A DNA stretch of 64,000 nucleotides from Ylistrum balloti (GCF_031769215.1 NW_026782370.1:868001-932000); one strand, 5' to 3'. Counted from the first letter of the stretch, positions 607 through 31,388 are shown. Translations and numbers: made by a program. The notes: generated by a model not told the origin, from the sequence alone.

Positions 607-1473
607 CTGAGAACGATAAGGTGAAAGTCATCTTATTTCATACCTATTGTAAATACTGTTTCTTGGAGTTTACACATTTTGCATACAGCCTCAGAACTCA
701 GTTAAAGAAAGAAAAATTTCCTCAGTACCATGAAACATTTACAAAGTTAATTAAGGGCATCTTTCCTATCTAACATTAGATTTCAAAACAATTATCATTT
801 TTAAACAAGGATTTTTTTTAAACATATTATTTGGATTCAGTATGTTAATTGATCAATTTGATATAGGATGTGAAGGTACACAAAAATTGGTGACACATTT
901 AAAAAGTACCCAAGAAATGATGACACACTTGCAAAATACACAAAAACTGATGACATACTTAAAAGGCTGAAGGGATAAACTCTATAGGACATTGGAAATT
1001 ACATGTTTTATCAATTTCATTTATGAAGCCTATGATATAGTACCAATAAAAAGAAATATAAGCACAATACTATTAGCAAATTAAATAACAAAATCAAATT
1101 TTGTGATTGATGATGAAGAGTGTATTGCTCAAAACAAAAATAACATAATGAATGAAAAATTTGCCAAAATATCAGGTGCTGAAGGAGTTGTTTACCACCA
1201 TGGTAAGTATCACAACAAGCAACTCAAATAAAGACCCACATAAAACACAACATGTAATAAAAAATTTCCTTGATTCATTTATAAATAAACATAAGTGAAA
1301 TATTTTTCTCTTATTTTGAATAAGGATTTTCCTGTTTTAGCAGTTTTACTAGACTGATTAATGCAAAATGAATATTTTACAATAAACAAAGATTAACATG
1401 AACATTATTTTTGTGATTTGATACATGTATAATGATGATTCATGCAACCCTTGTACAATGACATCAGTCTCAC

Positions 1474-1497
1474 CTTTGGGTGCTCTCCCCTTGGCGA
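1474..1497 (-). CDS. CLASP: CLASP 24-nt microexon (SPRGEHPK), phase 0-0, probably alternative
   Basis: ttgtcttgtttttttataag|TCGCCAAGGGGAGAGCACCCAAAG|gtgaga; frame-preserving, lies between phase-0 exons. Confidence 0.78.
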
Positions 1498-1776
1498 CTT
1501 ATAAAAAAACAAGACAACAGTTGCGTCCAATCAAAAATTTATGCTATTATCAATCTACTATCCGTATATAAAACACTTCTTGGAAATACAATTTCTTTAC
1601 CAACTTTTATAAAATATCTCTGAATATTTTCTAATCAGAACTATTTGTAAACGAAGAATACATCACTTCTATATTAACACCTCTATAAAACAAAGAATTC
1701 TGAGGTGACTTTTGTGAGGGTGCCTAACACAACAGTGTATTTGTGAATTTGTGTTCAACTGCTGCACCAATCTTAC

Positions 1777-1841
1777 CAGAGCATCCGCCATCGCATCTTC
1801 CAACTCTGAACCTGGGCGTAACAACCTCTGGGCCATCACAT
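1777..1841 (-). CDS. CLASP: CLASP exon (NVMAQRLLRPGSELEDAMADAL), 65 nt, phase 1-0
   Basis: ggattttatag|AT...CTG|gtaaga; homologous to AMRVLSTSTDLEAAVADAL. Confidence 0.95.
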
Positions 1842-2014
1842 CTATAAAATCCAACAACATGTTTTAGTGTTATTCCTAAACAACTATATTGATACAGCAA
1901 TGATCCCATGTCTGGTAATAAGCACAACTATATATATTGTTATTCAGTAGCATTACAAACAAAACCTATTTTATTGTCATGTACAAGACCATTATTACTT
2001 CTGAGTCAAAGGTA

Positions 2015-2350
2015 AAATGTCTTGCCCTTTGTGTACTGATTTTTTGGTGTACTGATTAAGTATCTTGCCTTCAGTATATTGGTCTAAGATCCTGTCCTTT
2101 GAGTACTAATTTAGGATTTTGTCCTTGTGTACTGATTAAGTATCTTGCCTTCAGTATATTGGTCTAAGATCCTGTCCTTTGAGTACTGATTTAGGATCTT
2201 GCCTTTGATGTTTTGATTTAGGATCCTGTACTTTGTTTACTGATTAAGGACTTTGCCCTTTGATTACCAAATTTAGATCCTGTCCTTTGGCAACCGATTT
2301 AGGATCTTGCCTTTTCTGTACTGATTTAAAATAATGTTCTTTTGTACTCA
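2015..2350. repeat. Degenerate minisatellite (about 26-27 bp subunits, with an 80-bp duplication)
   Basis: Repeated gtactgatt(a/t)aggat(c/t)ttg(c/t)cctt; near-identical blocks at about 2049 and 2129. Confidence 0.75.
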
Positions 2351-2485
2351 CTGTATGCCCATAGTAGCTCATGATTTAATTCCACTTGACTTTAAGTTTT
2401 GTTTTCTTCCTTCCCTCATTACAAAGCCATTTTCCTAGCATCCTTAACCTTACATGTGGTAAGTGATCATTTATTCTATACTTAC

Positions 2486-2545
2486 TGCCTCCCTTGCCGC
2501 CTTTGTTTGCAGGTAGCTTGCTGCCACTCAGCCTTCTCTCACGAC
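2486..2545 (-). CDS. CLASP: CLASP exon (GRERRLSGSKLPANKGGKGG), 60 nt, phase 1-1; contains an SxLP motif
   Basis: gtatgttacag|GT...GCA|gtaagt; open frame, positioned at the second EB-binding motif. Confidence 0.88.
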
Positions 2546-2866
2546 CTGTAACATACAAACATTTACAGGCCAAATTACTCACTTACCACATCCTCAATAC
2601 CATACCAGCTTTACTTAGTTACATAACAAATATCAAAGAATTTCCAACGATAATGATCTGCCTGCATCCAAGTAACCTCAACTAAAATAGAGGCAAGTAC
2701 ATAACAGCAACATCTGCCTCTGATTTACTTTACAACACGGCACTCATTAGAGTAAACTTATCATGACACCACTGAAGTGACCAAGACAGACAGTATCCAT
2801 TCAAAGCTCTGGGAAAGCCTAATGACCAAGTTGTCTGTATGAGCTAAAATTAAACATGTCTGTTAC

Positions 2867-3031
2867 CTGGCTGTAGGTTCATGCGAGTAGGGCTACCCTC
2901 TCGACTCGCTCCTTGACTTCGGGCAATCCCTGACCTGCGGGGACGTCCAGGAGTCATGGTGGACTCTGCGCGGCCTGTTGTGTGTGTGAGATAACTTAGA
3001 CGCGACGAGGGAGACCCTGAACGGCTGTTGG
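2867..3031 (-). CDS. CLASP: CLASP exon (PNSRSGSPSSRLSY...RRSGIARSQGASREGSPTRMNLQP), 165 nt, phase 1-1
   Basis: ctttgtgttttag|CC...CAG|gtaaca; homologous to SRSSSPG...RSKIPRSQGCSRETSP. Confidence 0.95.
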
Positions 3032-4438
3032 CTAAAACACAAAGGGGAATTTCAGTACAGACCGTTGTACACAACTACATAAGTAAATAAACAACAGCTT
3101 ATTATGCGTTCACAGTAGCAATACACGCCTTACATATTCTTACCATATCATTATATTAGAACAAGAGCATATCTGGTAATAAAAGTACTTATTGTGTGTT
3201 CCATGGTTTGATTATCAAAGAATTTTTGGCATTCTAAAAAATGTTTTCTCTGAGAATATTTTTTGTTTAAAGATATTGGAAACTTGCTTCAATCAAAGCC
3301 TCAATAAAAAAACTAGAAGAGGTTTTAGAAAACCTGGAAAAAAGAAAATTATTTTTGTAACAAATTAATTCCTCCTTCCCATGACATGCTGCATATGCTT
3401 CATTTTAACAACAAATTTACCTTCCTGCTAAGCTAATATAACACCGTAAAATTACTTGATATGTAACTATTACTAAATTTTCATGTCCTAGATGAAAAGA
3501 ATTTGAAACATGAATTTTAAAACACAATTACTCTGTATAAAGATCTTCAAGTTAGTATTTGAAGTGAAATCAAAACTGTTTTAATGAAAATCAGAAGATG
3601 TTAATTTCAACATCTAGTTCTAAATTAGCTAGTTCAGTAGTGCACATCAAGTTTCACTAGAAGTGTTGATAGCAAGCAGTCACTAGCAGCTAACTAGAAC
3701 ACAGTTAATACAAACACACCACAAAAAATGCTACTTTCACTTTGGATACATAACAAATTGCATATATATTTCACTTTCACTTTAGGTATACACTACACAA
3801 AGTTAAATATTGAATAAAAGGGAAAACACATGATCATGCATAGAGAGAAAGAAGATTACAGAAATTTAAGGTCTGATAATTGGGAGGGACATGGAAGAAA
3901 GTAAAACAATCAAGATGTACAAAGGGTGGGTACATGTGGACACAAGTTTTGCTTAGTGATGTAAACACTCTCTGGGATGGAGTTTGACAGAAATGGTGTC
4001 CAATGGTGAGGAAGGTTCACTGTGATGATGAAAATACTAATCAGTTTACAAAAGAACAAAGGAATTGTGCTGAGACTTCAGTGTGTTCAAGTTTCCAATC
4101 ATATTGGTGACATATCTTCCAATAATGATGATTGATACAAGTAAGACAATAAAATAGACAAAAACAAGTGTAAATATTCTATACACATATTCACACACTA
4201 ATGTGTAGCATGTTCCATTCTCAGAGAAGATGTGATACTAGTATAACCGGTCAAGGTCACACCATGCATCATGTAAAGGTCAAAATGACAAAGAAAATTC
4301 ACTAATACAACATCAAATCAGTCTGTTTATTAAATTGCATGCGCAACGAATATTTCATGTTTCAATCCTTCAAAATTCGATCAAGCCTCTGGACCAAGGT
4401 CCCCACCCCAGGGGACAGAGCCCTGGGGGGATACTTAC

Positions 4439-4528
4439 GTTGAGATTGTGAGGAGGTTGTGGTTCGTCCACGGGGTCGGCTTCGTTCAGGAGGAGATAAC
4501 ACACTTGAAGCAGAGCTTTTCTGTCGCG
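4439..4528 (-). CDS. CLASP: CLASP exon (RQKSSASSVLSPPERSRPRGRTTTSSQSQ), 90 nt, phase 1-1
   Basis: ttttattacag|CG...AAC|gtaagt; homologous to RRQSSGS...RGRSRAKVVSQSQ. Confidence 0.93.
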
Positions 4529-5739
4529 CTGTAATAAAATCAAGCATTGCCAGAAATGATGTCACAGACAAGAAAAGTATGCAGCACAACTAATCAGGAC
4601 AAGCAGAGGCTTTGTTTTCTTGGGAACAAAGGCACTATGGTAGGTTTAAACAGGACAGCATGATTGTGATTTACAAAATCAAATGACATGACAGTGCCAT
4701 TGTTCTGAAAAATATCTCTCATCTTAGGAATATTTCTATGTAAACAAGAATTTAAGTCAAATCATAGCAAATGTTTCTTTGTATCAAAAAATCAAACAGC
4801 AAGTTTCTAACTGTTCGAAGAAATATAGCAATGAACAGTAGTATCTTAATAAACCAAACTCCACTACAAACATAGTAGCTATCAAACTAAGTCAACTTTC
4901 TTCTTTCATAAATTTATAAAACTAGCCACTGTAACGCTTAACATCTCCCAACTGTTTTGTAGTTACCCTAGAAACACTCATATATCAGAGCCATATTTTA
5001 AATTAACATTGTTTATGTCTACAGTGATATACTCGTCTTCTGTATCCAGTTTATCAATAACAGACAGATCCATTACAATCCAGACATTAACAGACTTATG
5101 CCTGTTTCTATATAAAGAATATAATCTATGATACAGGTGCCCTATAATAAGCTCATGTTAAATTTGGTAAATATCATCAGTGATGTTTTTACCATTAAAC
5201 CATTAACACCAGTTAATACCCATTAATTTATTATAATTATAAGTTATTATGGAAAGTTGTTAAGCACTAACCAAATACTCTATAGATGATCTTTACTGTA
5301 TACTTTTTAATATTAACACTTTATATAATATATATATAATTTAGTGTAGTAAGTTGTAAAACGCCAGCAAGTTAAAACTAGTGTTATATATAACCGACAT
5401 CCTGGCAGTAAAATCACATTCTCTGAGTCTGATTTTCTATATATCTATTTAATAAAAAGTCTCTGATGACTCAAACTTCCATATCATTGTTGTTCAGGAT
5501 AATGACAGAATCATTACCAAAGGGAAGTAACTCTACGCCAAAGTTATAACACACCGTCAGAATATTACAATACAAATCAAAGGATACCATGAAAAAGTGG
5601 AACTCTTCTCTGTCGTTTTTAACCTGCATGGTAGTACCATTTATATCTGTACCTAAAAACAGCTTCAGTTTTGACTGGGTCAAAATCTTTATCATCGACT
5701 GGCCAGATTTATTCAATCAAAATGTTATAAACTAATTAC

Positions 5740-5970
5740 CATAATCATAATTATTATTTTCCTCTAATTTCATTATTTCTTCTTCAGTGTCCCAGCCATC
5801 ATCTTCCTCCTCCTCGTCATTGTAATTGTCATTCTCATCACCCCTACCAGGAATTTCCATCACATAGGGAAATATTGCAAAATGAACACGACGATTCTTG
5901 TTTCCAATCGTGTGGTTATTTTGAAACTTTTTCCCCACCCGTAAAACACCATTCATCAACATAATGAAAT
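5740..5970 (-). CDS. Candidate alternative CLASP exon, 231 nt, phase 1-1 (FIMLMNGV...KNRRVHFAIF...DEEEEDDGWDTEEE...NYDY)
   Basis: catatag|AT...TATG|gtaatt; open in the CLASP frame, length a multiple of 3; no homology recognised. Confidence 0.42.
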
Positions 5971-6030
5971 CTATATGTATTGAATCAAACAGTCCACCAG
6001 TTGTTCATGTATGGTGGCAGAAACACACCA

Positions 6031-6454
6031 ACCATAACACTGTGTCTGTGTAGTCCCAGGATCAACTGACCATAACACTGTGTCTGTGTAGTCCCAGGAT
6101 CAACTGACCATAACACTGTGTCTGTGTAGTCCCAGGATCAACTGACTATAACACTGTGTCTGTGTAGTCCCAGGATCAACTGACTATAACACTGTGTCTG
6201 TGTAGTCCCAGGATCAACTGACCATAACACTGTGTCTGTGTAGTCCCAGGATCAACTGACCATAACACTGTGTCCGTGTAGTCCCAGGATCAACTGACTA
6301 TAACACTGTGTCTGTGTAGTCCCAGGATCAACTGACCATAACACTGTGTCTGTGTAGTCCCAGGATCAACTGACTATAACACTGTGTCTGTGTAGTCCCA
6401 GGATCAACTGACCATAATGCTGTGTCTGTGTAGTCCTAGGATCAACTGACCATT
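6031..6454. repeat. 38-bp minisatellite, about 11 copies
   Basis: accataacactgtgtctgtgtagtcccaggatcaactg in tandem. Confidence 0.97.
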
Positions 6455-9400
6455 ACAACTTCACCAGGCAAACTGGTAAACATGGATCCCTCAAATCAAT
6501 ATGTAAATAGAGTTCCGTTTTTAATGTTCTCACCTGACTAAATCTCATTTGGAAAAAAACAATGGCAGAAGTTTAAAATATATCAGAAATAACACAGAAA
6601 ATAGTTACAGGTTCTCTGTTGGTAGGTAAATCCTTTACAGATATGAGAATGCTATGTATTGTTCTGGTATCACAAAGATTTCTTGGAAAGGCTATATGTT
6701 ATGAGAAATACAGTGACTGACAACAGGTATATCCCAAGGTATTAACAGTCCATCACACATTACATTCTACTGTATCAGAACATATACCATCCTTCAACTG
6801 TAAATGATTTCCAGTAACCAATTCACAACAAGTGAGCATGAGGTTTCACACTGTGAGCTGTACTCACATCCTGAACACAGCACTAGGCCAGCACTGGTGC
6901 CACTCCAAGAAGGACAGAAATGACCACGTACATCTGTGACCCTGCTGACTCCATGGAACAGTTGAACAAATGTACTGAACACTGGATCTTTGAACCACAA
7001 TTGTTCTTTTATAAACATTCCAATAGAACAGTCATGTCTTCTAATCTGTTTTAGTTACAACTGCCTACAGACAGTATTCACCTAGTCAGACAGAGATAAT
7101 CCTAGATCACTGTACACGTTTTAATGCAGATGAAAAGACACCCTCCTAAGCTGTGCTGATCACAGCATGTTAAAATCCAAATCCCTTAAGTTTACAGGTT
7201 TTTTCAACAGGACACAACACTAGTTACACTAGCTTTGTTGACTGAAGTTGGAGTGCATAACATCTTCTGTAATTACTGATCCTGAATTTGAATTACACTG
7301 ATATCTTAACTGCCCAAACCATTTCTTAATACTACTGAAAATTTCATATTCCACACTTCAATCTCTGCTCAGTCCTGATTGGTGTCAAACGCTTCTATTT
7401 TAAATTTTTAACAGATACTTATAAATTGTAAAGTACATTTACTTATACCATGTAAGAAGACTTCTGTATGCACAACATAATGACTGTATGACATGGTCTT
7501 TTGTGAAAGACAATCTTTGACAGCTGTAAATCCTATTTGACATGACTGAAAAAAAAAATTGCGACACTGATGTTTTGATTAAATAATGAAATTAAAATCC
7601 ATCATAAAATTAATTTTTCACATATATCCATTTAAAAAAAAAGTGAATCTAACAATAATTTGATGTATTACTCCAAACATCTAACATAAGACACTATGAC
7701 CATGTATGTATAAGCTATATATAGGCCATCACTGGAGAAGTGACGAAGTTGTAACAGAGAATCCAACCATATCACAGAACACTTCCAGGTAAGACTTCCA
7801 AACACAAATATTTCTCAGGTGACTTCTGAATCTCAAGGTCATTTCTATCCTACAGAAGCTGATGGATGGCCGCTCTGATAGGGTGTCCAGACTAATTTAC
7901 GTCCAGTCCTGGGAAACAATGGGATGCTTGAAGTAAGTTGTACAGACTAACAGATGTTTGAGCACAAGATACTAGCTGGTCAGATCTATCCTCATCTGAC
8001 CGCCTCGTCAGGTGGTGACTCAAGGTGACCAGCGAACAATAAACCTGTCAGAATATCACCGACATCAGAACAGCTGACATGTCTTTTACCTGTATCAGGT
8101 AAGTATTAATTACAGGTAAGTGGTTTATTCTAATGCACCTGTTTATGTGCATCCAATTGGCTATAAACAACTGGTCAGTGTACTATCCTACCAGGCTTCT
8201 TCATAAGAACACTGGACACGACTGGGGAAACTGCTAAACATGCCTCCAGCTTTGCTGCTTTAGTGGTCAGTTAGTGGTCAGTTAGTCCATGCCCCATTGC
8301 ATTGTATTTCTGAGTGTATATATATTCAATATGCTGAATCTGTGACCAACACTTGATCAGTATATATAGATCTTCTGGTCAATTGACCAATGGTCAAGAC
8401 ATGTCACAGTTGAATGGACCACAGAGGTGATCTCTATGTAATGTGTTCAGTTATACAGGTAGCCCATTTGTGATAAACAAGCTGACATCACAGTTAGGTA
8501 CCACGACCTTCTGCAGTAATAATGTTAATATCAGTGTGACAGTGTTGACTAAGTGAGTGTGGACAATACAATAGCACAGACAGTATCAACCTTAGTCTCT
8601 ATCATTCCACTACAGTATTACAAAACAACTAACGTTTAAAGTAAACCTCCAATAGATGCTATGTTTTTACACTCAATAGACCACCAAACATCAGTATAGA
8701 AGTGTCTGTCCTGTTACCATCTCAGGTTATCTTCCATAAAACACTCCCTTACATTATCACAAAGTCATCACAAATGATTCCTAAATACCTTGTCCATTCA
8801 CAATACCTGTGGTCAGACCATAGTCAGTGTGTCCGGAGTGAGAGATAATATCTTTACACAATCAGAAATGTCCACCTTGCCGGTAGTTGTGGAGGGGTCT
8901 GATTGTAGCTGTTAAAATCATAACAGAAAATGATAAAATCCACAGAAATGTTAGTTCACTGATACAAACAGCAAATCCATATTCATCTCGTTACAAATGT
9001 AATTGATTGAGTTTTACCATATATGGCAGCCAGAAATTTCAGTTGTCACTTTTTTCACAGGTCAAAGGTCGAGTTATCTTACAACACGAAGCACAAGGAA
9101 TTCCAGTGAAATCTTCTCCTAATTCTAAAACAAACAGTCTCCACAAATTCTTCCTGCTGTGTTTACAACATGTTAAGGATAGGTGACATCAGAGGTTGGA
9201 GGTCAACTACTGGTAGTCGTTGAATGTGATGATGACCAGTACCTGGGTACCAACAATACTTGCTATACGTCTATGGGAGTTTGACATACGAAAACATCTT
9301 CACCCAAGGATTCCAAATATATCATATATATATCATATAGATACAGTGGTTTGATAATTTTCACCTTTGCACCAAATCAAAGGTCTCCTTATATACTGTA

Positions 9401-11182
9401 AATATCAGGTTCCATAACATACACAGGTATATAATTATACCTTCAATTGGTCATACCTGATCTCCAGCCGTCAGTCACCGTTCATATCACACAGCCATTT
9501 ACCTTTCAGCCTGTTAAAGCTTCATAAACTAGAGACTCCATCTTTACTATAGTTTAAAGACTTTTTGATGAAGATAAAAGCATCGAGGTAGATATTTATA
9601 TAATTATGATAATCCAAAGCAACTTTCATTCCTTCAGCACTTGTTTCAGTATAAGCCTTTTTATACATGTTAAGAAACCTGATTTAGTCAGCATATCCCT
9701 GAAATCCTCTTAACACTGATATGGCAAGTTCTGGTCAGAGCATTAGGATGTAAATAACGGTACTGTTACACTGCCAACAAAATACCTTTATCCCTGATTT
9801 GTAACATGTAACTACGGTCGATGTCCTATGTTTTTGAAATATTCCCAAGCAACCTGTGTACAAATTTAGACTGAAACTGATCAATACAATATCGTCTAAG
9901 TCATATATATAGCCTTGGTGTTAATGGACTACAACAGTCCATAAAATTTTGTTTTAAAAGGTTGTTTTTTTTCTTGCAAATTTATTTTCCAGATAAATCT
10001 ATGAGCAACAGAAGGACATCTACCATAAATGCGTGTGATTAACCTGCGTACAGTATGAATTGGGATTAAAGATTCAAGTACACATAGAAAATTGTGAATA
10101 TTGAATAACTAGCATGTGGCTGTTCTTTGTTCACCTCTAGTGTATTAGATGAAAATATTATGTTAACAATACAAGTAAATCCGTACAACTTTCTAATACC
10201 AGTCAGACTTGATAATGTGTTCCATTCATCAGCTCTAGGTAAACTCTCTGGCCTTGCAGGTGCCTTGTTGTATTGTCCGAGCTTTATTAAACCACCTGGA
10301 CAAAACAAGTCTCCCTATCATTAGGATCAGCAATCCCTTCAAAGCCGATCTCAACAAGGTCTTTGACTTCTGTTGTTATTGAAAAATAAACAATCACCAT
10401 TTGAACCTTGACCACCATATAAGGAAATCCTGTCACTGCTGAAATAAGGTAATGGATCAATGTTGTAACAAAACAAAATTTGAGCGATTCATTCTACTAG
10501 AAGATTGTACTTCTTTCCTTACTTTTATCAGTCTAAAAGCCTGGACTCAGTATAACATATTATACATGATTGGCCTGATTCAGCTTATTCAGTTTAAGTA
10601 ACATTTCGGGGTTGTATCATGGTCCATCTATTTCTCTAAAGACCCTACAATTTACACCTGGATTTTACCTCACAAACATCTTAAGTAAGGTGTTACCTGT
10701 CTGAAGGGCTGTCAAAGGTCAAGCCCTAGACAGGTAGGCTGAAAGTAAGTGACAGTCAGTGGGGGATATCAGTCCCAACTTAGGTGCCTACATAAACACC
10801 AGTAATGGTTCGTCAGCAGTCTGGCCTACAACACTACCCAGTGTCACTCTAAGAATTGTTACCTGGAGTATAGATTATATACAGCTAGACCTTTCCTAGA
10901 CTTCAATATTTTATTTACCATGTATACAGTATAAACAAGGATATCTATCTGTCAACTTGTGATGTTTTCTTTATATTTCTCCCTCCTTATACTGCCAAAC
11001 CTCTTTAATGTCATTCTCATAGAAAATGGTGGGAGTATCATGGAAGTGTTTTTATTCTCAGTCTGACTTCAAACTGTTAATACCCTGTATTTATCCACCT
11101 CAGCCATTGTCTGGTAAAAAGCTCACCCCTTTATATTGAATCAGAGGGTTATGTGAGGATCCCTGGACTTACAATCCTATCA

Positions 11183-11492
11183 TAATCCCATCCCTTGCCA
11201 TTCTATTTTAACACCCCCTTCCCCCCACCTACACCCAGACATCCAGGTTATTGGTAGTTGTTTTGGTTAATCTCATCCCTTGTCACCCTATTTTAACACC
11301 CCCCCCCCCTACACCCAGGTTATTGGTGGTTGTTTTGGTTAATCTCATCCCTTGCCACCCTATTTTAACACTCCCTTCCCCCCCTACACCCAGACATCCA
11401 GGTTATTGATGGTTGTTTTGCTTAATCCCAGCCCTTGCCATCCTATTTTAACACGCCCCACCCCCAGGTTGCTGGTGGTTGTTTTGGTATCC
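11183..11492. repeat. About 70-85 bp tandem repeat x4 with variable poly-C tracts
   Basis: taatctcatcccttgccaccctattttaacacccc...ccaggttattggtggttgttttgg repeated. Confidence 0.85.
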
Positions 11493-14054
11493 TTACATTG
11501 AAGATCTAGGACAACCTTCCTCGCTATTATTTGGAAAAACTGGTAAATATCAGTAATCAGAAACACTTCTTAAAATAAAGAAATTGTTAATTATCAATAT
11601 TCCCCCTCCCCCCACCCCCCAAATGTAAATGTACATTCCAAAGTAAGGTAAGAACGATCAATTTCAATATTTCCAATAATACATATTTTCCATATGTTAA
11701 CTAAATTCAACTCCCATTTATAAAGAAACAGTTGCAGTGAATATTAAACTACTTTTAACAACATTCTGTTTGCTTTTAACATTCAATACTAAATTTCAAA
11801 GACCAATAGTGGAAGAACCTCGACTCATGCTCAGCTGATACATAAAAAACTAAATCAATAAAAATTCCTGCAAATTTCAAATCAACACATTGTCGTACAA
11901 TTCAACTGCTGAATCGGATACTGTTACTATCAACAGACATAAAACAACATTTAATGTGATTATCTCTGAAATTCAATATTCTGTAGAAATTGATTATATT
12001 TTGTAATACACAAACAGTGTTGCTTCACTCAGTTGTAAGTAAACATTTCGATAGGGCAAAAGTATCGGATAATAACAAAATGTATAACTTTATTCCAATA
12101 AACATCCCCTACCCTTGTTCCAACTAGCCTTCAGTTACCCGGTAATAGGAAATATAAACGATGTTTATAGGTCTGCAACTTTGTTACAGCTATCTGGCTT
12201 TACACAATAAACAACACAATAAAGATCTTGCTAGCTTTAACACAAATGTTTTTACTTCTGGAACTAGCCACTGATCGATAAATCCCCTATTCTTTTGATC
12301 AATCATTAAAGATAAATCCACCCTGCTTTAAAACATATTTACTACAGAGAAATTCTCCCTGTCTGACCTCTATTTTATATCCTAGCTGCATGTTCTCCAA
12401 TATTCAATATGAGTTCCAATGTTAAGAAAATTGACCAATAACTACACAGAACCATTAAAACCAATCATTGTAACTGATTACATGGATCTGTGTGATTAAA
12501 GAGCTTTCCTCCCCAATAATCGTATCTGTGTCCTACAAGGGAAAACCATTTCATATCCGTCCCATCCTTCTGACATCATACGACCTGACAAAGAAAATTC
12601 TTAATACCTCATATTGCTTTTAATTTTTTGATGTGATTTTCCTTATCCTTGATGCCTTGATGTTTAACTAGAACTTCGATGGTTTGATGTTTAACTAGAA
12701 CTTCGATGGTTTGATGTTTTAGTTCTCATTTTCAGATTTTACAGAATGCTCACCAAAGTATCAAAATTGACACAATTACACACATGACTACCAAATAGCC
12801 TGAATTGATCACAAATGAAGTGTCAATGTTTGTCCCTGTCAAATATTGACACAGTAAAAAGCTACTAATCCGCTGAACCAGTCGCAGAGTACAGTAATTG
12901 ATAACGGCAATATCTACATCAGGTAAGCATACAATGAATGAATATACCTGATCTCTTCACACAACAGCTACCAACTGATGTCTGACAAACTCCAGGCTAT
13001 TTATAAATGTACCGAATCTGTCCCAGTAAATGCCCTATCACTGGTCATTGCCCCAAGGAAAAAATCTCCTTGAAGACCTTTCTAACTGGACAGTGTAATA
13101 CATATGTCTGTGTGAAGAAGCAGAGATAGAACTTCAGGGAGTCTTCAACAACATTTAAGAAGGAAAAATAATTTTACTGTAGAACTATATCCTTGTAGAT
13201 CATAAACCTATAACAGATATCCCTTCCTTCACTATTCATGGTAAAAAGTCTTAATAATCATATTTTGTTGCAACTAATTTTTCTACCAACCCCTGGGGCT
13301 TATAAGGATGTTGAGTTTTATAGTGTAATTCAAACATCTGTTTACAAGATTTCCCCGGTAAAATATTCCTACTAGTACCTAGTCCAGTGTAATACTATAC
13401 CCATGGAAAATTTCATTTCTATAAATCTCTCATTCAGTTTTATTTACAGTAGATACATATCTATGGTCAAATCAACACAAGCTCTTCTGCTCTTTATCTC
13501 CCCTGTATAAAATACTTCCGTTATGATACGAAAACTGACACTGCCGACATACAATACATAAATATATAGGAGATTGTGTCTGCATACCTGTTTGAGTCAT
13601 CTCTCCACTATTCCATTGTGCCAAGCTATTAATTGTACCTGTAACTGGTATTAATGCTACCTGTGCATATAGGAACCCTTGTGATCCCTAACAGAGACAA
13701 AACAAGCTCCCCTTAAGGGGACAGTAATCGGAAACTTTCTTCTATATCTCTAATACAATTTCATTTTGTCTTATTACCTGGCTGTGAGTCAAAACGGTGA
13801 ATCACAGAGTGTACTTATAAATCTTACAGAAATATATCACAATAATTAATATATTAATAAGTATTACAGGAATTATGTATACATCAGATAGAGTATATAT
13901 CTACATATACATGTCATACACTGATACTGTGATGGTAAATATAGGTACACATGAGATACACAAAAGTATCAACTATGAACATTACCATATAAACTGAAGA
14001 GGAGGTAGAGCAGTATGTTGTATGTTTCTGATCCCTCACACAAATTAGAATATA

Positions 14055-14926
14055 CATCATCCTAACACCTAACTGTCCCTACTGATCTACAACAGGAGCA
14101 TGGCACAGTACATCATACTAATACCTAACTGTCCCTACTGATCTACAACAGGAGCATGGCACAGTACATCATACGAACACCTAACTGTCCCTACTGATCT
14201 ACAACAGGAGCATGGCACAGTACACCATACTAATACCTAACTGTCCCTACTGATCTACAACAGGAGCATGGCACAGTACATCATACTAACACCTAACTGT
14301 CCCTACTGATCTACAACAGGAGCATGGCACAGTACACCATACTAACACCTAACAGTTCCTACTGATCTACAACAGGAGCATGGCACAGTACACCATACTA
14401 ACACCTAACAGTTCCTACTGATCTACAACAGGAGCATGGCACAGTACACCATACTAATACCTAACAGTTCCTACTGATCTACAACAGGAGCATGGCACAG
14501 TACACCATACTAATACCTAACTGTCCCTACTGATCTACAACAGGAGCATGGCACAGTACACCATACTAATACCTAACTGTCCCTACTGATCTACAACAGG
14601 AGCATGGCACAGTACACCATACTAACACCTAACTGTCCCCTGATCTACAACAGGAGCATGGCACAGTACACCATACAACAGGAGCATGGCACAGTACACC
14701 ATACTAACACCTAACTGTCCCTACTGATCTACAACAGGAGCATGGCACAGTACATCATACTAACACCTAACTGTCCCTACTGATCTACAACAGGAGCATG
14801 GCACAGTACATCATACTGACACCTAACTGTTCCTACTGATCTACAACAGGAGCATGGCACAGTACATCATACTAATACCTAACTGTCCCTACTGATCTAC
14901 AACAGGAGCATGGCACAGTACATCAT
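14055..14926. repeat. 56-bp minisatellite, about 15 copies
   Basis: catcatactaacacctaactgtccctactgatctacaacaggagcatggcacagta in tandem. Confidence 0.97.
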
Positions 14927-15004
14927 TCGTTTGTATTCCTTTATCACAGACAAACTTGACGATACATCTTCCTAATACCTAACTGTTTCCACTGATCTAC
15001 AACA

Positions 15005-15149
15005 CTTTCACCTTACATAATGCTGTTCTTCCTATATCTCGTTTCACCTTACATAATGCTGTTCTTCCTATATCTCGTTTCACCTTACATAATGCTGTTC
15101 TTCCTATATCTCGTTTCACCTTACATAATGCTGTTCTTCCTATATCTCG
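15005..15149. repeat. 36-bp tandem repeat x4
   Basis: tttcaccttacataatgctgttcttcctatatctcg. Confidence 0.95.
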
Positions 15150-15327
15150 TGTGTCTGAAAACAAATCAATGAAATATACAACCTCCTGCAATGAAACGAC
15201 CCTTCCACCAAACCTTTCCTTACCAATGACTGTAACCCTTACCACAGACTATAGAACCACTCCTTCAAATGTACTAGAAACTAGTAGTCAAGCATTCTAC
15301 TTGTGTACAGGGTAAAACATGGCTTAC

Positions 15328-15603
15328 GAAGTGAAGTTGTGGCACCGGCTGTCATCCGTGACAGAGCCGCAACTTGTGCTGGCGTGCGACGCCGCGGTGT
15401 GTACGTTGAATATCCTGAACTTGTGGCTGCAATTGAATATGGGCCTGGACTCGTGCGCCCATATGGACTTGGAGATGTCCGTCCATACGGACTTGGACTT
15501 GTGCGTCCATTGGCCAGGTCAACTGCACTGCTTGACCTCACGATTCTGTCCTTGGGTGTATTGGATGACTTACTGCTACTGCGTATAGGAGTATCAAGGT
15601 CAG
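15328..15603 (-). CDS. CLASP: CLASP exon (DLDTPIRSSSK...RSSSAVDLANGRTSPSPYGRTSPSPYGRTSPGPY...ATTSL), 276 nt, phase 1-1
   Basis: ctgttccag|CT...TTC|gtaagc; open Ser/Pro/Arg-rich frame; RSSSAVDL resembles CLASP RSRSDID. Confidence 0.9.
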
Positions 15604-16270
15604 CTGGAACAGTAGTGTGTCAGATGAAGAAGCAGACTGGAATACTGGGTGGGTGGGATGGGTGTGATAAGGATGGGGAGACAGGGATACAGGTGTAAGG
15701 GTTGGGCAGTAACAACTACTTGTTGGGCAAAGGAGGAACAGGGAGAATGAGGAAAGGCAACGTGTAAAAATCAAGACAAAAAAAAGTAAAACGTTACGAA
15801 AAACAAGGAAGTGACAAAAATAATAAAGACACTAACAGAGAGTGTTAGTACCTCGCTATAGGTCATATATACTTATACATACAGCGTTTATATATATTTA
15901 TATGATATATATAGTAGTATGCAATCAGTATATAGTAAACTGTTTCAACAAGATTTGTTTCCAAACAAAAAGAAATAAAATATTGAAATTGGTTTTGCTC
16001 TATGCTATGGTAAGTTGAGTTATCTCCCTTTAAACAGTTGAAACAGCTTTATGTACAGAACAGTTTAGATAAGAACTGCAAACTCAAAGCAAACAGAGTT
16101 GATGATTAAAGAAAAATATAAAACAAAGCATCAAACTTCTATACCAGCTAAAACATAAGCACAGCAGCAACAGTGTAGTAGAGATGTTTACATGGTCAGT
16201 GAGTACATGCAGGTCACATGATAGTCACATTACTGACTGGTCATGTGACCCAACCACCACTTTCTCTTAC

Positions 16271-16309
16271 CTTCCACAGTTGGTTCATGTTCCCCTTCAA
16301 CATCCATGT
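16271..16309 (-). CDS. CLASP: CLASP small exon (DMDVEGEHEPTVE), 39 nt, phase 1-1, probably cassette
   Basis: Long pyrimidine tract tttttccttttcatttctcatatcacatccag|AC...GAAG|gtaaga; frame-preserving. Confidence 0.8.
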
Positions 16310-18392
16310 CTGGATGTGATATGAGAAATGAAAAGGAAAAAGTGATCGTATAAAGAAAAAAAAAACATGCTGGCAAAAAATTGTGCATTCCAACAAAACC
16401 AATCATTCTACTCATCGTTATCACTCTTTCAACTAACAAGCCATTTGCTATATGCAAACCAGCATTTTCACATTTGAAATCAAGTTAAAAGAATCATGCT
16501 TCTTTGTAAGTCAAGAGGTTTGAATCCATCACCCTGGAGTTGTTTTGTTTCAGAATTCTCTGAAGACCGGTATATCTACCACATCCAAACAGTCACCTAA
16601 TATTCCTCTGGCAATAGAGTTTAATATGTGATTTTATCATACATACGTTCCAACACCAAAGTAAAACCTGTTATGTTCCACTTTCAGAGAAGCTAAAAAG
16701 TTTAGTTATTTGCCCAGCAGTTGCTTACCAATCTCTCACACAAGCAGTGCACGCTGTATAATATGTAGGTATGTGATAGTAGTCTGCCACTGGATATATA
16801 ACCTTGACAGACAAATTTCATGTACAAAATAAGCAACCCCATAAAATCGGCATAAATCTGTATCATGCACAAATCCAATTAGTAAGTTGATATTTGTAAA
16901 AACCAATATTTTTGTACCTTGGTCACCCCTTCATATTGTTCAGGATTATAATAGTACTGCTTGTTTAACCATGAATTCTTCCACTATCTAACAAACAACT
17001 TTAAATTCTAAATGTCATGCTTTGGTAAACTTAAACTACAATGTAATTTGAATATCATATCCCCACACCATCTAGTATCTAACATCAAGAACCTTACATG
17101 ATATATAAATTGTGTTAATGATTCAAACATGCCACCACTCCATCCAGGAACCAAAAGTAAATTGAGCAGCAATTCACTCATGACCATTTTATGATGTATA
17201 GCTACACATAATTTATACAAAACAAATCAATTTGTCAATCACACAAAAATTACATTAGAGATAAATATTTTGTGTCCTTTCAATTCTTCATTATTGATTT
17301 CTACATAATAAACAGCAGGGAATCACAAGAACATTTCCTGTGAAGGTCATGTGGTTGAGGAAAATGTGATATAAAATGAAATGTGGTATTAAATATCATG
17401 ACAATAAGTGGTATCAGTTGTGTATGTCTGCAGATTCACATCCTGTGTTAATAAGTCTGGTGTACATTTTAGCCATACAATTCCTGATTATAGCTTAAGA
17501 TCAATTAGCACTGTTTAATATTGGCATGAATAACATGATGGAGATTTTGGACTCTGTAAATTTTGCGAAAGCCTGTGATTGTTTTTCACCTCATGCAAGT
17601 GGTGTACACAGCGTAAAGGCAGATTCTCTTTTTCAGCCAGAAATAATACTCTTTTTCTAAATTGATTTTTAAAACTGTAAATCTTTCTCAGTTTGGCACA
17701 GGTATCTTTTTCAAGAATGTTAAAATCACATCTTCAGAAAGAAAAACATCTGACTGATTTCAGGGACCCATTGGATCAATGCAATCTTTCAGAAGACTTT
17801 TGTGCTGCCACAGCCAACTGATAATACACATTAGAAATCCAGCATACAAAATAAAGCACATTTACAGTAATCTTGATGCTGTTAGTTAAATCATGCTCAA
17901 ATTTTTTCACAAAATAAAAAAAAGAGAAAAATAAATGAAAAATAAATGAAGAAAGAAAACCAATGAACAGGGATTTAACGGTTTCAAATAAAGTATGGGG
18001 GAGGAACACAGAACAAAGAAAAATTACGAATGAACAAGGGCAGGGTCACAGGGTCACGAGGGGGGTCACAATATTGGCAACAAAAAACAGGTATATATAG
18101 CAAATAAACAATATTTCAGTTGGTTAGGAAAGAAAATTAACCATAACCTTCGCAATCATTGTAAATTAATTGAAAATTTACTTATAAATTAATATTTCAA
18201 GCTTGAAATTAAAAGAATACAGTGAAATTAAAAAGACAGGAAAAGTGATTTACTGTGCAAACAAAGACACCAACAATTAGCAAAATGAATCTTAGTGAAG
18301 ATCAGAGACTGAAGAGAAGTATTTGTAGATTTTGTAGATGTGTGAGCGTGTGATATTGTGAACTAGCCTGGGGATGGTCAGATAGTATTTAC

Positions 18393-18451
18393 CTGCTCCT
18401 GTGTCACTACGCGCTGAACTGACTCTGGAATGCTTTTTCTTTCCTATCCGT
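18393..18451 (-). CDS. CLASP: CLASP exon (RIGKKKHSRVSSARSDTGA), 59 nt, phase 2-1
   Basis: ttcttttgtag|A...CAG|gtaaat; needed to bridge the phase 2 and phase 1 neighbours. Confidence 0.9.
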
Positions 18452-19073
18452 CTACAAAAGAATTCATTTACAATTTATAATTTTGGAATTCTGACTGAAA
18501 GAAAATTTTCCAGTGATTTTTCAACAATCTAATAAAGAAAGTACTGGGTATAGACATACTGATTATGGTATGCCCATGCTTGGTAACAATCCCAACAGCC
18601 TCAGATGAAATGCCAACAAATATGATACATCAATGTCCAGTAATAAGCCAACAAACTATTTTAGTTAGAGAAATCAATTGGTGTTTTTGGGACAGAAAGC
18701 CGACATTTTTTCTTCAATATCAGAATAAATGACTACACTAATCCAATACATTATTCAGCAAATGTCAATCAAGAAATGACTTTGGACAAGCTATCAGAGA
18801 ATAGACTCCGGGAAATTCCCATATCGGCAATCAATATCTTTATATTGGCAGCCATTTTGCTTATGAGAGTCATGTGACTATATCTGAAAGTGATTTAGTC
18901 ATGTGATACATGTTGTGTCCATACTTAATTGTATTTAGCGAAGTTCAGGCTAGTACGTAGACAAAATTAATTATAATGAAAACTCCATATGCTGTTATGA
19001 TTGAAGAGTGAAGAGAATTGTTTTCTGGGTAATATGACAGGACTTCAATAGGCCAGATATGTCTGTTGCTTAC

Positions 19074-19277
19074 CCAAGTGTACTGGAGTCAAATCCACGA
19101 TCCTGACTTGCTGATCGTGGCCGAGATTTTATACGTAGCCCCTCTGCACTGTTTAAGGAGTTATTACTTGATGAACCACTCAGTTCTCCTTGAAGCATCT
19201 TCTGTTTGGCAGGCTCCAAGGCATTGAGAAGGGCATCAGCCTGATCCTTAAAATGTTCCGCAAATCCCCAAAAAGCC
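19074..19277 (-). CDS. CLASP: CLASP exon (AFWGFAEHFKDQADALLNALEPAKQKMLQ...), end of TOG2, 204 nt
   Basis: ttttctctttcctcctcag|G...TGG|gtaagc; homologous to CYWGFHSHFSREAEHLYHTLE. Confidence 0.97.
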
Positions 19278-19564
19278 CTGAGGAGGAAAGAGAAAACTTA
19301 AGTTGACTCAAGCAATCAATATCAGGTCATGCATGTATGATGAATAGTCTACAGATATGATGCTTTTATTATTCAAAGAAAATTGGATACATCACGATGT
19401 GTCAATTTTTATTTCCAAATGTTTGTCGTATATACAAGATTCTTTCACTTGTAATGATATATCATGCCAGAATTAAATTACTCGTCCTACAGAGATGGGA
19501 GCTATCTCTGGTTTTGGGATCTAATGAGACCATCATCTGACGCCCGTGAACATGGTATACATAC

Positions 19565-19702
19565 TTGCGAGAAAAGGCCCTGGCGTCACTGTCTGGATCA
19601 CTGATTCCCCGTTTGATTGCATCCTGTAGGTTGGCTATGTGTTTCTCTAGGACGTGTGTTGGCCAGTGATGCAGCACCTGGTTCAGAATCTCACAACAAA
19701 AC
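19565..19702 (-). CDS. CLASP: CLASP TOG2 exon (FCCEILNQVLHHWPTHVLEKHIANLQDAIKRGISDPDSDARAFSRK), 138 nt
   Basis: gtattttatag|G...CAA|gtatgt; homologous to EWQTHSLERH...KGIHDADSEAR. Confidence 0.97.
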
Positions 19703-19900
19703 CTATAAAATACATACAGATTTTCTTAAAGCACACCACTAACAGGAGTTTCCTAAATCAAAGGGCAGATAAAACAGATACTTACTCAAGCAATAATAAG
19801 TCATTTTTAAAGAAAACATTTTATTCTTTTATTCATTTAATTTTCAAAAGCTGTATCAATGGAAAAATATCAATGATAACAAGATCAAGAGCTGATCTAT

Positions 19901-21030
19901 CTGTGGATAATACCCAGGTAAAAGAGGTAGTAAGACAAATCTTACAGGTAAAAGGTCACATGTCCACTTACCTGTGGATAATACCCAGGTAAAAGAGGTA
20001 GTAAGACAAATCTTACAGGTAAAAGGTCACATGTCCACTTACCTGTGGATAATACCCAGGTAAAAGAGGTAGTAAGACAAATCTTACAGGTAAAAGGTCA
20101 CATGTCCACTTACCTGTGGATAATACCCAGGTAAAAGAGGTAGTAAGACAAATCTTACAGGTAAAAGGTCACACGTCCACTTACCTGTGGATAATACCCA
20201 GGTAAAAGAGGTAGTAAGACAAATCTTACAGGTAAAAGGTCACACGTCCACTTACCTGTGGATAATACCCAGGTAAAAGAGGTAGTAAGACAAATCTTAC
20301 AGGTAAAAGGTCACATGTCCACTTACCTGAAGATAATACCCAGGTAAAAAAGGTAGTAAGACAAATCTTACAGGTAAAAGGTCACATATCCACTTACCTG
20401 AAGATAATACCCAGGTAACAGATGTAGTAAGATAAATCTTACAGGTAAAAAGTCACATGACCACTTACCTGCAGATAATACCAAGGTAACAGATGTAGCA
20501 AGACAAATCTTACAGGTAAAAAGTCACATGACCACTTACTTGCGGATAATACCCAGGTAACAGATTTAGGAAGACAAATCTTACAGGTAAAAGGTCACAT
20601 GCCCACTTACCTGAAGATAATACCCAAGTAAAAGAGGTAGTAAGACAAATCTTACAGGTAAAAGGTCACATGCCCACTTACCTGAAGATAATACCCAGGT
20701 AACAGACCTATTAAGACAAATCTTACAGGTAACAAGGTAACATGTCCACTTTCCTGTGGATAATACCTAGGTAACAGATTTAGTAAGACAAATCTTACAG
20801 GTTAAAGGTCACATATCCACTTACCTGAAGATAATACCCAGGTAACAGATGTGTAGTAATACAGGTAAAAAGTCACATGACCACTTACCTGTGGATAATA
20901 CCAAGGTAACAGATTTAGTAAGACAAATCTTACAGGTAAAAAGTCACATGACCACTTACCTGTGGATAATACCCAGGTAACAGATTTAGTAAGACAAATC
21001 TTACAGGTAAAAAGTCACATGACCACTTAC
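19901..21030 (-). repeat. 71-bp tandem array x16 starting exactly at the 5' splice site; each unit GTAAGT...YAG
   Basis: Minus-strand unit GTAAGTGGWCATGTGACYTTTTACCTGTAAGATTTGTCTTACTA...TTACCTGGGTATTATCCACAG. Confidence 0.97.
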
Positions 21031-21101
21031 CTGCGGATGACATTAGACTTGGAGGTTAGGTTCCCTGTGATAATTGGTATCAGCCTATAAGAATGTGTGT
21101 A
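21031..21101 (-). CDS. CLASP: CLASP TOG2 exon (YTHSYRLIPIITGNLTSKSNVIRR), 71 nt
   Basis: cttctctcttacag|TAC...CAG|gtaagt; homologous to HTHIPRLIPVITSNCTSKSVAVRR. Confidence 0.97.
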
Positions 21102-21656
21102 CTGTAAGAGAGAAGAAAGTCTGGGTTATTCAACATAATCATAAATATTGTGCTTAATAAAATACCTCCATGATTTTCTTTTCTGACAACATCAATTCTA
21201 ATCCTGATTTTTCTAACTTTCCCAAAGTTACTTCAATGTTACCTGATACTGTATCAGCCATATAAAAGTATGAGAAACATCCAGATTTGTGAACTGAAAC
21301 TTCAGGTAAACATTCTACAGTTTAATGTGTATGGATGTTTCTCTTTCAGTACAATTACTATTGATAGATTTTTAAAGATGTCTTGATCTTTTCTATAACT
21401 TCCAAATTTACAAACAACATCAGATTATGATAACTTTGTGACAGCCCATTGTCTTCACAACTGTTCTTTGAATGTGTATCTAACGAAAATTGAAGTCAGA
21501 CTCCATAATGTCTAAATTCTTTAAATCAAACCATTTCTTTCAGAGAAAAAACTTCCTTGGGAAGGGGAAGTATATGAAAATAAATTCTGTACTGAAAACT
21601 TATGATAATAAGAGCTGATATCATTAACCAAAGAAAGTATTGGCAGCACTGTGTAC

Positions 21657-21792
21657 CTGAATGATGAATCGGATACAAATAATGCCTGAAGACGCCATGA
21701 CCTTGGCACTATTGGGGATGAGAGCTATGAGATTAGGCAGCTGCGTCTCCGTGAAGTGATCAAATCTATTGCCAAGCTGTTGTGACAGGTAT
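21657..21792 (-). CDS. CLASP: CLASP TOG2 exon (YLSQQLGNRFDHF...LIPNSAKVMASSGIICIRFIIQ), 136 nt
   Basis: tttgtgttgtag|A...CAG|gtacac; homologous to LGNKFDH...LIPNSAKIMATSG. Confidence 0.97.
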
Positions 21793-22203
21793 CTACAACA
21801 CAAATTACAAAATCTCCTTTAGTACATTTCATAACAAAATTTCAAAAACTTAAAACCAAAATGTAGGGAAGAGCTATACATTCCAAAAGCAGCTAGCAGA
21901 CACAGGTGATTCTCTACGTACCTTGAGAGAAATTTGTATAATAAGGTACAATCCCACAATATATAAACAAAGTATATGTTCCTATAGCAGTGAATGATCA
22001 CGATATAAATATGTATTTACTCTACATGTATACATAATAAATAATGATCAAACCACAAAATTTAACCCAAAATAAGCCCAGCGACCAAACTAGAAATTCT
22101 AACTGAAAGTTAAGGAGTGGATATATTCCAGGGCTAGGAAAGATAAATTTTTGTAATCAAATTCCACTGAACTGGCTTTTAACTAAGCATGTATTTACGG
22201 CAT

Positions 22204-23365
22204 TATCAATACACTATAAATACACATCTATTGTATCTAATTATCTAAGTATCAACATGGAAATACACTATAAATACACATCTATTGTATCTAAGTATCT
22301 AAGTATCAACAGGAAATACACTATAAATACACATCTATTGTATCTAATTCTAAGTATCAATAGGAAATACACTATAAATACACATCTATTGTATCTAAGT
22401 ATCAATAGGAAATACACTATAAATACACATCTATTGTATCTAAGTATCAATAGGAAATACACTATAAATACACATCTATTGTATCTAAGTATCAACATGG
22501 AAATACACTATAAATGTATCTAAGTATCAATAGGAAATACACTATTAATACACATCTATTGTATCTAAGTATCTAAGTATCAATAGGAAATACACTATAA
22601 ATACACATCTATTGTATCTAAGTATCTAAGTATCAATAGGAAATACACTATAAATACACATCTATTGTATCTAAGTATCAACATGGAAATACACTATAAA
22701 TACACATCTATTGTATCTAAGTATCAATAGGAAATACACTATAAATACACATCTATTGTATCTATATCAACATGGAAATACACTATAAATACACATCTAT
22801 TGTATCTAAGTATCAACATGGAAATACACTATAAATACACATCTATTGTATCTAAGTATCAACATGGAAATACACTATAAATACACATCTATTGTATCTA
22901 AGTATCTAAGTATCAACATGGAAATACACTATAAATACACATCTATCTAAGTATCTAAGTATCAATAGGAAATACACTATAAATACAACATGGAAATACA
23001 ATAGGAAATATAAATACACATCTATTGTATCTAAGTATCTAAGTATCAACATGGAAATACACTATAAATACACATAAATACACATGTATCAACATGGAAA
23101 TACACTATAAATATATTGTATCTAAGTATCAACATGGAAATACACTATAAATACACATCTATTGTATCTAAGTATACACATCATCTAAGTATCAACATGG
23201 AAATACACTATAAATACACATATTGTATTGTATCTGGAAATACACTATAAATACACATCTATTGTATCTAAGTATCAACATGGAAATACACTATAAATAC
23301 ACATCTATTGTATCTAAGTATCTAAGTATCAACATGGAAATACACTATAAATACACATTTATTGA
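22204..23365. repeat. AT-rich 45/46-bp satellite with variable 8-bp gtatctaa insertions; scrambled in its distal part
   Basis: gtatcaacatggaaatacactataaatacacatctattgtatctaa in tandem. Confidence 0.95.
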
Positions 23366-29883: not shown

Positions 29884-31388
29884 AACATTACTGTTGGAGT
29901 CCCAGATAATGATAACATAACTGTTGGAGTCCCAGATAATGATAACATTGCTGTTGGAGTCCCAGATAATGATAACATTGCTGTTGGAGTCCCAGATAAT
30001 GATAACATAACTGTTGGAGTCCCAGATAATGATAACATTGCTGTTGGAGACCTAGATAATGAGAACATTACTGTTGGGAGTCCCAGATAATGATAACATA
30101 TCTGTTGGAGTCCGAGATAATGATAACATTGCTGTTGGAGTCCCAGATAATGATAACATAACTGTTGGAGTCCCAGATAATGATAACATTGCTGTTGGGA
30201 GTCCCAGATAATGATAACATTGCTGTTGGGAGTCCCAGATAATGATAACATTGCTATTGGAGTCCCAGATAATGATAACATTGCTGTTGGAGTCCCAGAT
30301 AATGATAACATTGCTGTTGGAGTCCCAGATAATGATAACATAACTGTTGGAGTCCCAGATAATGATAACATAACTGTTGGAGTCCCAGATAATGATAACA
30401 TTACTGTTGGAGTCCCAGATAATGATAACATTGCTGTTGGAGTCCCAGATAATGATAACATAACTGTTGGAGTCCCAGATAATGATAACATTACTGTTGG
30501 AGTCCCAGATAATGATAACATTGCTGTTGGAGTCCCAGATAATGATAACATAACTGTTGGAGTCCCAGATAATGATAACATTACTGTTGGAGTCCCAGAT
30601 AATGATAACATAACTGTTGGAGTCCCAGATAATGATAACATTGCTGTTGGAGTCCCAGATAATGATAACATTGCTGTTGGAGTCCCAGATAATGATAACA
30701 TTGCTGTTGGAGTCCCAGATAATGATAACATTACTGTTGGGAGTCCCAGATAATGATAACATAACTGTTGGAGTCCCAGATAATGATAACATAACTGTTG
30801 GAGTCCCAGATAATGATAACATTGCTGTTGGAGTCCCAGATAATGATAACATTACTGTTGGAGTCCCAGATAATGATAACATTGCTGTTGGGAGTCCCAG
30901 ATAATGATAACATAACTGTTGGAGTCCCAGATAATGATAACATTACTGTTGGAGTCCCAGATAATGATAACATTACTGTTGGAGTCCCAGATAATGATAA
31001 CATTGCTGTTGGAGTTCCAGATAATGATAACATTGCTGTTGGAGTCCCAGATAATGATAACATTGCTGTTGGAGTCCCAGATAATGATAACATTACTGTT
31101 GGAGTCCCAGATAATGATAACATAACTGTTGGAGTCCCAGATAATGATAACATTACTGTTGGAGTCCCAGATAATGATAACATTACTGTTGGAGTCCCAG
31201 ATAATGATAACATAACTGTTGGAGTCCTAGATAATGATAACATTACTGTTGGAGTCCCAGATAATGATAACATTGCTGTTGGAGTCCCAGATAATGATAA
31301 CATTGCTGTTGCAGTCCCAGATAATGATAACATTGCTGTTGCAGTCCCAGATAATGATAACATTGCTGTTAGAGTCCCAAATAATGAT
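29884..31388. repeat. 27-bp minisatellite, about 55 copies
   Basis: gttggagtcccagataatgataacat(t/a)(a/g)ct in tandem; source of the long spurious ORFs. Confidence 0.98.

Follow-up and report, generated by a model that had tools for sequence, protein, structure and literature searches.

The window, meaning here the whole 64-kb stretch of Ylistrum balloti DNA that was analysed, carries on its minus strand a gene that was identified from the protein it encodes as CLASP, at the region coding for TOG2. Four exons (A-D, Table 1) are 100% identical to, and contiguous in, the NCBI protein "CLIP-associating protein 1-A-like" of Y. balloti (P0219), and this predicted model joins the end of exon B straight to position 19702 in exon C. 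A continuous join between exons B and C was also found in the Pecten maximus model (P0222), which differs by one residue across exons A-D, and, with a few more differences, in the Mizuhopecten yessoensis model (P0234) and in P0233, a Logan transcript protein from the same cluster as models of Argopecten irradians. Exons were searched singly.

The intron between exons B and C (21030-19703) has a length of 1328 nt and begins with a tandem array, which Tandem Repeats Finder (TRF) reported as a single array at 19901-21038 on the minus strand with a period of 71, 16.1 copies, 92% matches and a score of 1763. Individual units were delimited on the sense (minus) strand by cutting at every G[T/A]AAGTGG. 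This procedure yielded 16 tandem units within 19901-21030, comprising 14 units of 71 nt, one of 64 nt (unit 3, which carries a 7-nt deletion) and one of 72 nt (unit 5, which carries a 1-nt insertion). The units follow one another head-to-tail, start with GTAAGTGG and end in (C/T)(A/T/G)CAG. The original prediction had placed a 71-nt array from the first base of the intron that follows exon 21031-21101, built of units running from a GT donor to a YAG end; TRF and the 16-unit table both agree with this placement, and the unit table with this layout.

Table 1. Positions of the CLASP exons and of the features of the intervening array, in window coordinates.
Feature	Position	Strand	Detail
Exon A	21791-21657	minus	100% identical to P0219
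Exon B, CLASP TOG2, 71 nt, encodes YTHSYRLIPIITGNLTSKSNVIR + 2 nt	21031..21101	minus	P0219 residues 474-496
Exon C, CLASP TOG2, 138 nt, G + FCCEILNQVLHHWPTH...AFSR + AA	19565..19702	minus	P0219 residues 498-542
Exon D	19277-19074	minus	100% identical to P0219
Authentic donor CAG|GTAAGT	21025..21033	minus	9/9 nt match to donor consensus
Unit starts 1-8	21030, 20959, 20888, 20824, 20753, 20681, 20610, 20539	minus	
Unit starts 9-16	20468, 20397, 20326, 20255, 20184, 20113, 20042, 19971	minus	
Broken junction CAG|GA	20753..20754	minus	Unit 5 donor destroyed
Broken junction CAA|GT	20539..20540	minus	Unit 7 acceptor-like AG destroyed
32-nt imperfect palindrome, first copy	21003..21034	minus	CAGGTAAGT pairs with TTTTTACCTG 20 nt downstream
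Unique intron tail, 198 nt	19703..19900	minus	Outside TRF array; ends with real acceptor ttttatag

Intact CAG|GTAAGT is present at 13/15 internal junctions, in agreement with the earlier count, and the two broken junctions are those that had been named beforehand, CAA|GT at 20539 and CAG|GA at 20753. The end of unit 7 retains an exon-type G (CCGCA). The donor consensus CAG|GTAAGT is complementary to U1, and 14 perfect donor-consensus sites, together with 27 copies of TTACCTG, lie within the 1.1 kb of the array; on the sense strand of the entire window CAGGTAAGT occurs 15 times in total, 14 of these occurrences being inside the array and including the real donor. When exon B is read through into the array, the reading frame continues as CGC AGG TAA and stops at once, as had been foreseen for the use of a distal donor alone.

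The repeat reaches 8 nt into exon B, where the exon reads ATCCGCAG and most unit ends read ATCCACAG. The repeat monomer joins the last 8 nt of exon B to 63 nt from the intron start; the match between the 71-nt unit and the exon end is limited to 8 nt, or ~12 nt at most. Units 11, 14, 15 and 16 are identical to each other, as are units 12 and 13, units 1 and 2 differ at a single nt, and pairwise comparison of the central units gives differences at 4-13 positions. This pattern of identity is one of ordinary minisatellite turnover, which is still ongoing. In an alignment of the 16 units, 29/72 columns are variable, with 2/9 variable columns at the junction versus 27/63 elsewhere (one-sided Fisher p = 0.21), and 24/72 circular windows of 9 columns are at least as conserved as the junction. 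The 16-unit alignment holds no signal of extra conservation of the junctions relative to the rest of the unit, and a lower mutability of the junction positions, raised earlier as a check, is not supported.

A word search with the reading frame of exon C led to two metagenome-derived mollusc-like contigs, L013 and L014, which encode matching CLASP exons with 77-80% identity. The exon B orthologue of L013 (887-957) is also 71 nt long and ends in AA|GTAAGT; it is followed by a phase 2 intron of 303 nt (958-1260), within which TRF detected no tandem repeat, and exon C runs from 1261. The L013 intron splits the same Arg/Lys codon after base 2 as the scallop intron does, and exon C of L014 (225 onward) begins at the identical codon position, behind tttttcag. 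Reduced to one unit, the scallop intron would measure ~270 nt, near the 303 nt of L013. Because the same codon position and phase 2 are found in L013 and L014, the host intron is old, and demonstrably older than the array.

The same comparison bears on a proposal in the original prediction, namely that the locus is a snapshot of intron gain by tandem duplication, which would mean that duplication of an exonic AGGT segment made the intron itself. Such a mechanism has been documented elsewhere (PMC3265369, PMC4974935), and the microhomology to which the prediction had pointed does exist, as a short direct repeat (ATCCGCAG / ATCCACAG) at both array ends. However, both L013, with its 303 nt and no repeat, and L014 have the intron at the identical codon position and phase, exon B has 71 nt in scallop and L013 alike, exon-matching sequence makes up only 8 nt of the 71-nt unit, and 198 nt of the intron are unique. 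Set against these observations, a birth of the intron by duplication is scarcely credible.

The distribution of the unit was examined in the 648-Mb genome, where a 213-nt probe found the CLASP locus as its sole match and a 34-nt degenerate unit core, allowing for up to three mismatches (≤3), was found at the CLASP locus only, the reversed-pattern control giving 0 matches. The unit core was also absent from metagenome contigs in a pattern scan. A transposon or a dispersed satellite was ruled out, the unit being confined to one locus of the 648-Mb assembly. Around the CLASP intron array minisatellites are commonplace, the 64-kb window containing 19 arrays that amount to ~10.6 kb (16.6%), with periods of 19-111 nt plus some higher-order ones; among the mapped exons, only one of the 19 arrays touches an exon, and this is the array at 19901-21038. 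Examples of the other arrays, all within CLASP introns, are those at 29884-31388 (30 nt x 50), 45167-46335 (28 nt x 42) and 22235-23364 (46 nt x 24).

Independent DNA came from X1, the only public run in which the stretch was found. Its contigs (records 4, 5, 6 and 7) cross the array edge on either side with 0-6 differences, record 4 bridging the unique intron tail and the array. Across 18900-21900 the X1 contigs are even over exons and introns and show no exon-exon joint; X1 is genomic DNA, and is uninformative on splicing for that reason. Single-base differences from the window come to ~1% over the same interval, and the sequence points to a different haplotype or individual. An X1 contig also carries a 16-nt insertion, TCCCTTTGAACAGGTA, after 21232, in the intron upstream of exon B. 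The array interior (20011-20919) is without an X1 contig, and both the copy number of 16 units and the arrangement of the interior are taken from the assembly alone. The gap may stem from filtering, or the individual sequenced may have an array of another composition; it is there although units 3-10 have variants that set them apart.

The lack of X1 contigs over 20011-20919 is the one observation in favour of an assembly artefact in the copy number or the array interior, and a gap of this kind is no proof in itself. The edges, however, are bridged by independent contigs, the word depth of these edge contigs is 2-3x that of the flanks, as expected of collapsed identical units, and the interior units carry ordered, distinct variants, which are atypical of a collapse or expansion error. 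We consider an assembly artefact very improbable.

The array is best described as a locus-specific minisatellite at an exon-intron boundary, of the kind known as mirages and from IVS7 of human F7, the first donor of which is predicted to be used and the others to be silent or harmlessly re-spliced. This description as a whole is likely to be right; our confidence is higher for the origin of the array and lower for the predicted splicing. Three features that mark boundary minisatellites were found at the locus: the array is intronic, its first monomer lies across the donor, and the host intron is independent of the array. From the anatomy of the locus, CLASP would already have had an old intron of ~270 nt, at the start of which a 71-nt segment, made up of 8 nt of exon end and 63 nt of intron start, would have been duplicated in tandem. 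The direct repeat ATCC(G/A)CAG at both ends and the 32-nt palindrome may have promoted this duplication, after which unequal exchange or slippage would have brought about growth to 16 copies, with the youngest copies lying at both array ends.

Since the monomer copies the whole consensus donor, including the exonic CAG, CAG|GTAAGT recurs at each boundary, and the exon-type CCGCA of unit 7 is consistent with unit ends that derive from the exon. The AG|GT signature, for all its likeness to recursive sites, is a by-product of copying and not an evolved signal. No evidence of array function was found here, and we regard the array as probably tolerated, without function.

Boundary-spanning minisatellites have been described in human F7, IFI6 (6-16), CBS IVS13, LMNB2 and PDGFA intron 4 (Borensztajn et al. 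2006, PMC1557585). The monomer of human F7, a 37-bp VNTR, consists of the last 4 bp of exon 7 and 33 bp of IVS7; the first donor alone is used in LMNB2, PDGFA and F7, and the next two copies are used too in IFI6 and CBS (PMC1557585). In F7 minigenes the pseudo-sites were functional but lost to the most upstream site, and only those with perfect consensus drew some splicing (PMC1557585). The choice among identical donors, which had been raised earlier as a new question, has already been studied experimentally in this human gene (PMC1557585). The CLASP array resembles the F7 type in having an authentic donor, then a row of identical pseudo-donors and one acceptor. Its 16 copies are near the numbers given for F7 (5-9), CBS (15-20), LMNB2 (10-15) and PDGFA (16-18), and its 71-nt unit is near in size to those of LMNB2 (100 bp) and PDGFA (81 bp). 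In contrast to the weak site of F7 (UGG|gugggu), the CLASP array repeats a perfect CAG|GTAAGT; its unit, with 71 nt and an AG end, is formally a mini-intron, and its host is a mollusc.

A second precedent is provided by the mirages of amphioxus. These minisatellite-like tandem repeats duplicate exon-intron boundaries of the Adh3 gene and of globin genes and leave splicing undisturbed (Ebner et al. 2010, PMC3087553, citing Canestro et al. 2002). As in mirages, the CLASP units are copies of exon end plus intron, many units contain AG/GT, and the host is an invertebrate genome rich in arrays; concerted evolution, with the boundary units left out of homogenisation, is a further likeness. Mirages, however, span more exon sequence, affect either boundary and have been proposed as a path to new introns, whereas the CLASP intron predates its array. 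Perfect-consensus pseudo-donors, units formally bounded by GT...AG with a length near the intron minimum, and a mollusc host set the CLASP array apart from the known cases.

If the human precedents hold in the scallop, the first donor, adjoining exon B, would be joined to the acceptor at 19703 and the 13 intact copies would be mostly silent. In-register splices from unit to unit would only shorten the array in the RNA, leaving the normal mRNA reachable at a later step; because such a splice merely shortens the array, occasional splicing at unit boundaries would be largely harmless. Dead ends are predicted if the exon donor is spliced to the acceptor-like site that closes unit 4 or unit 16, as the exon end would then lack a usable donor. 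In the case of the acceptor-like end of unit 4, no donor would be left because of the CAG|GA at 20754|20753. A further dead end would follow from splicing of the unit 8 donor to 19703, which would place the broken CAA of unit 7 against exon C and so leave the remaining units without an acceptor. Transcripts caught in any of these dead ends would carry an immediate stop codon.

As a rival to mostly silent copies, the unit boundaries might act as dual-specific AG|GT sites, with substantial multi-step splicing that removes 71 nt or multiples thereof per step; the minisatellite origin would be unchanged. Each unit is, on inspection of its ends, formally bounded by GT...AG and of near-minimal intron length, and the 13 intact CAG|GTAAGT junctions count in favour of such splicing. 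The TACTAA-like branch motif noted originally in some units is restricted to units 1, 2 and 4, TACTAC being the form in most units; motifs of the yUnAy type lie 18-30 nt before the unit ends (CTTAC at ~30 nt, TTTAC or GTTAC at ~18 nt), and most units have no AG between these motifs and the terminal AG. The share of pyrimidines at -23 to -4 is 0.60-0.70 at the unit ends and 0.50 at the real acceptor (19703), compared to 0.80-0.85 at the acceptors of exons B and D. Human UBC uses dual-specific sites in tandem repeats (PMC10809524), the sequence logic is such that most in-register paths would still arrive at the correct mRNA, and the CLASP pseudo-donors are perfect, as were the only sites that drew some splicing off the first donor in F7 minigenes.

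Several observations nevertheless speak against multi-step splicing on a substantial scale. A strict peel of one unit at a time, which the original prediction had presented as a necessity if the decoy donors were not ignored, halts because the exon, after units 1-4, abuts GAAAGT and has no donor: the ratchet regenerates CAG|GAAAGT after unit 4 and stalls at unit 5. The dead ends from exon to unit 4 end and from unit 8 to 19703 would be costly if frequent, in a gene that is a conserved, single-locus microtubule regulator. The junctions are without extra conservation, and the stretch before the terminal AG of the units is G-rich and interrupted by GGG and A residues, which makes it a poor pyrimidine tract; the mapped CLASP introns in the window are ~290 nt or longer, versus units of 71 nt. 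Each of the pseudo-junctions can be sequestered in predicted hairpins on either side, at -8 to -16 kcal/mol. In human boundary minisatellites, splicing proceeds from the first donor or from one of the first two or three copies (PMC1557585), and the recursive sites of flies serve very long introns (PMC6110457). On balance, substantial multi-step splicing is unlikely, though it retains some weight. The fuller version, in which the CLASP intron is lost by stochastic multi-step splicing at the 13 AG|GT sites, the units are real mini-introns and TTACCTG hairpins choose which sites are open, is in our judgement more doubtful still; if true, the locus would be a naturally occurring system in which to study how donors are chosen and re-spliced beyond vertebrates and flies.

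Recursive sites consist of a juxtaposed acceptor and donor (PMC8605326), and in flies they are found mostly in introns >40 kb (PMC6110457). The likeness to the recursive sites of Drosophila and human lies in the (Y)AG|GTAAGT, which would regenerate a donor after a first splice, and to this extent the earlier recursive-site reading stands, AG|GTAAGT being juxtaposed at 13/15 junctions; the remainder of that reading does not, given an intron of 1.3 kb and the lack of junction constraint. Known recursive sites are single and conserved, have strong pyrimidine tracts and lie in introns that measure tens of kb, whereas the CLASP array, in an intron of only 1.3 kb, has 13 copies spaced 71 nt apart, with weak tracts and without added conservation. 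For annotation this carries a warning, in that an intronic run of AG|GTAAGT need not equal recursive splicing.

All units contain the 32-nt palindrome, whose left arm includes the donor, so that the hairpin, as predicted, would cover it. Donor hairpins are predicted to reach -16.2 kcal/mol for the real donor, -11 to -16 kcal/mol for most copies and -7 to -10 kcal/mol for three variant or broken junctions. Pairing with an upstream TTACCTG is predicted at -8 to -11.6 kcal/mol for most pseudo-donors and at -0.3 kcal/mol for the real donor, which is the only one without an upstream TTACCTG partner. We speculate that this lone-sided pairing, as modelled, could give the real donor a brief kinetic advantage during transcription. 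Single units are predicted to adopt branched folds, with energies of -13 to -15 kcal/mol and z = -0.6 to -1.6. A search of Rfam returned matches to mir-552 only, at 20861-20963 and 20086-20188, with 34 and 28 bits compared to a gathering score of 100, and these sub-threshold matches arise because neighbouring copies of the palindrome pair together. A mirtron or miRNA cluster was ruled out on account of the branched unit folds and of Rfam matches below the gathering score.

Structure also enters into the possibility that the array is regulatory, either as a copy-number rheostat acting through NMD or as a cluster of U1 sites with TTACCTG decoys that tunes splicing rate, nuclear retention or premature polyadenylation. 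In its favour may be cited the immediate stop that follows from the use of any distal donor alone, the density of perfect donor sites and U1-like TTACCTG motifs (14 and 27, respectively, in 1.1 kb), and predicted folding of the region that is better than that of shuffled sequences (z = -3.7, at the exon-array boundary, and z = -2.1). The structure, however, results from one repeated palindrome, there is no conservation signal in the 16-unit alignment, two of the junctions have decayed and the 18 other minisatellite arrays of the window are without evident function, so that we rate a regulatory role as highly unlikely.

An explanation for tolerance has been put forward for repeats bounded by AGGT, as in UBC and VCX3A: their persistence is attributed to the possibility of removing them by splicing (Duan et al. 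2024, PMC10809524). The CLASP array shares with UBC the AG|GT at unit boundaries, and the same argument of tolerance applies to it. The UBC units, however, are coding, 228 nt long and in frame, with dual use shown by RT-PCR, whereas the CLASP units are non-coding, out-of-frame and lead to an immediate stop. The CLASP array amounts to a natural construct, in which one real and 13 intact identical perfect donors, each placed after an AG, stand in a gene that is conserved and belongs to a non-model animal. It bears on how the first donor wins among equals, and on whether AG|GT-bounded repeats persist through being spliceable out.

Another mollusc-like genome also shows a boundary duplication, here on the opposite side of the orthologous intron. 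In L014, a contig from a hydrothermal-vent metagenome, the acceptor end of this intron is duplicated in tandem (172-250) as two 39-nt copies, each made of tttttcag followed by 22-25 nt of exon start; the copies are spaced in frame, and 13 residues would be added if splicing used the upstream one.
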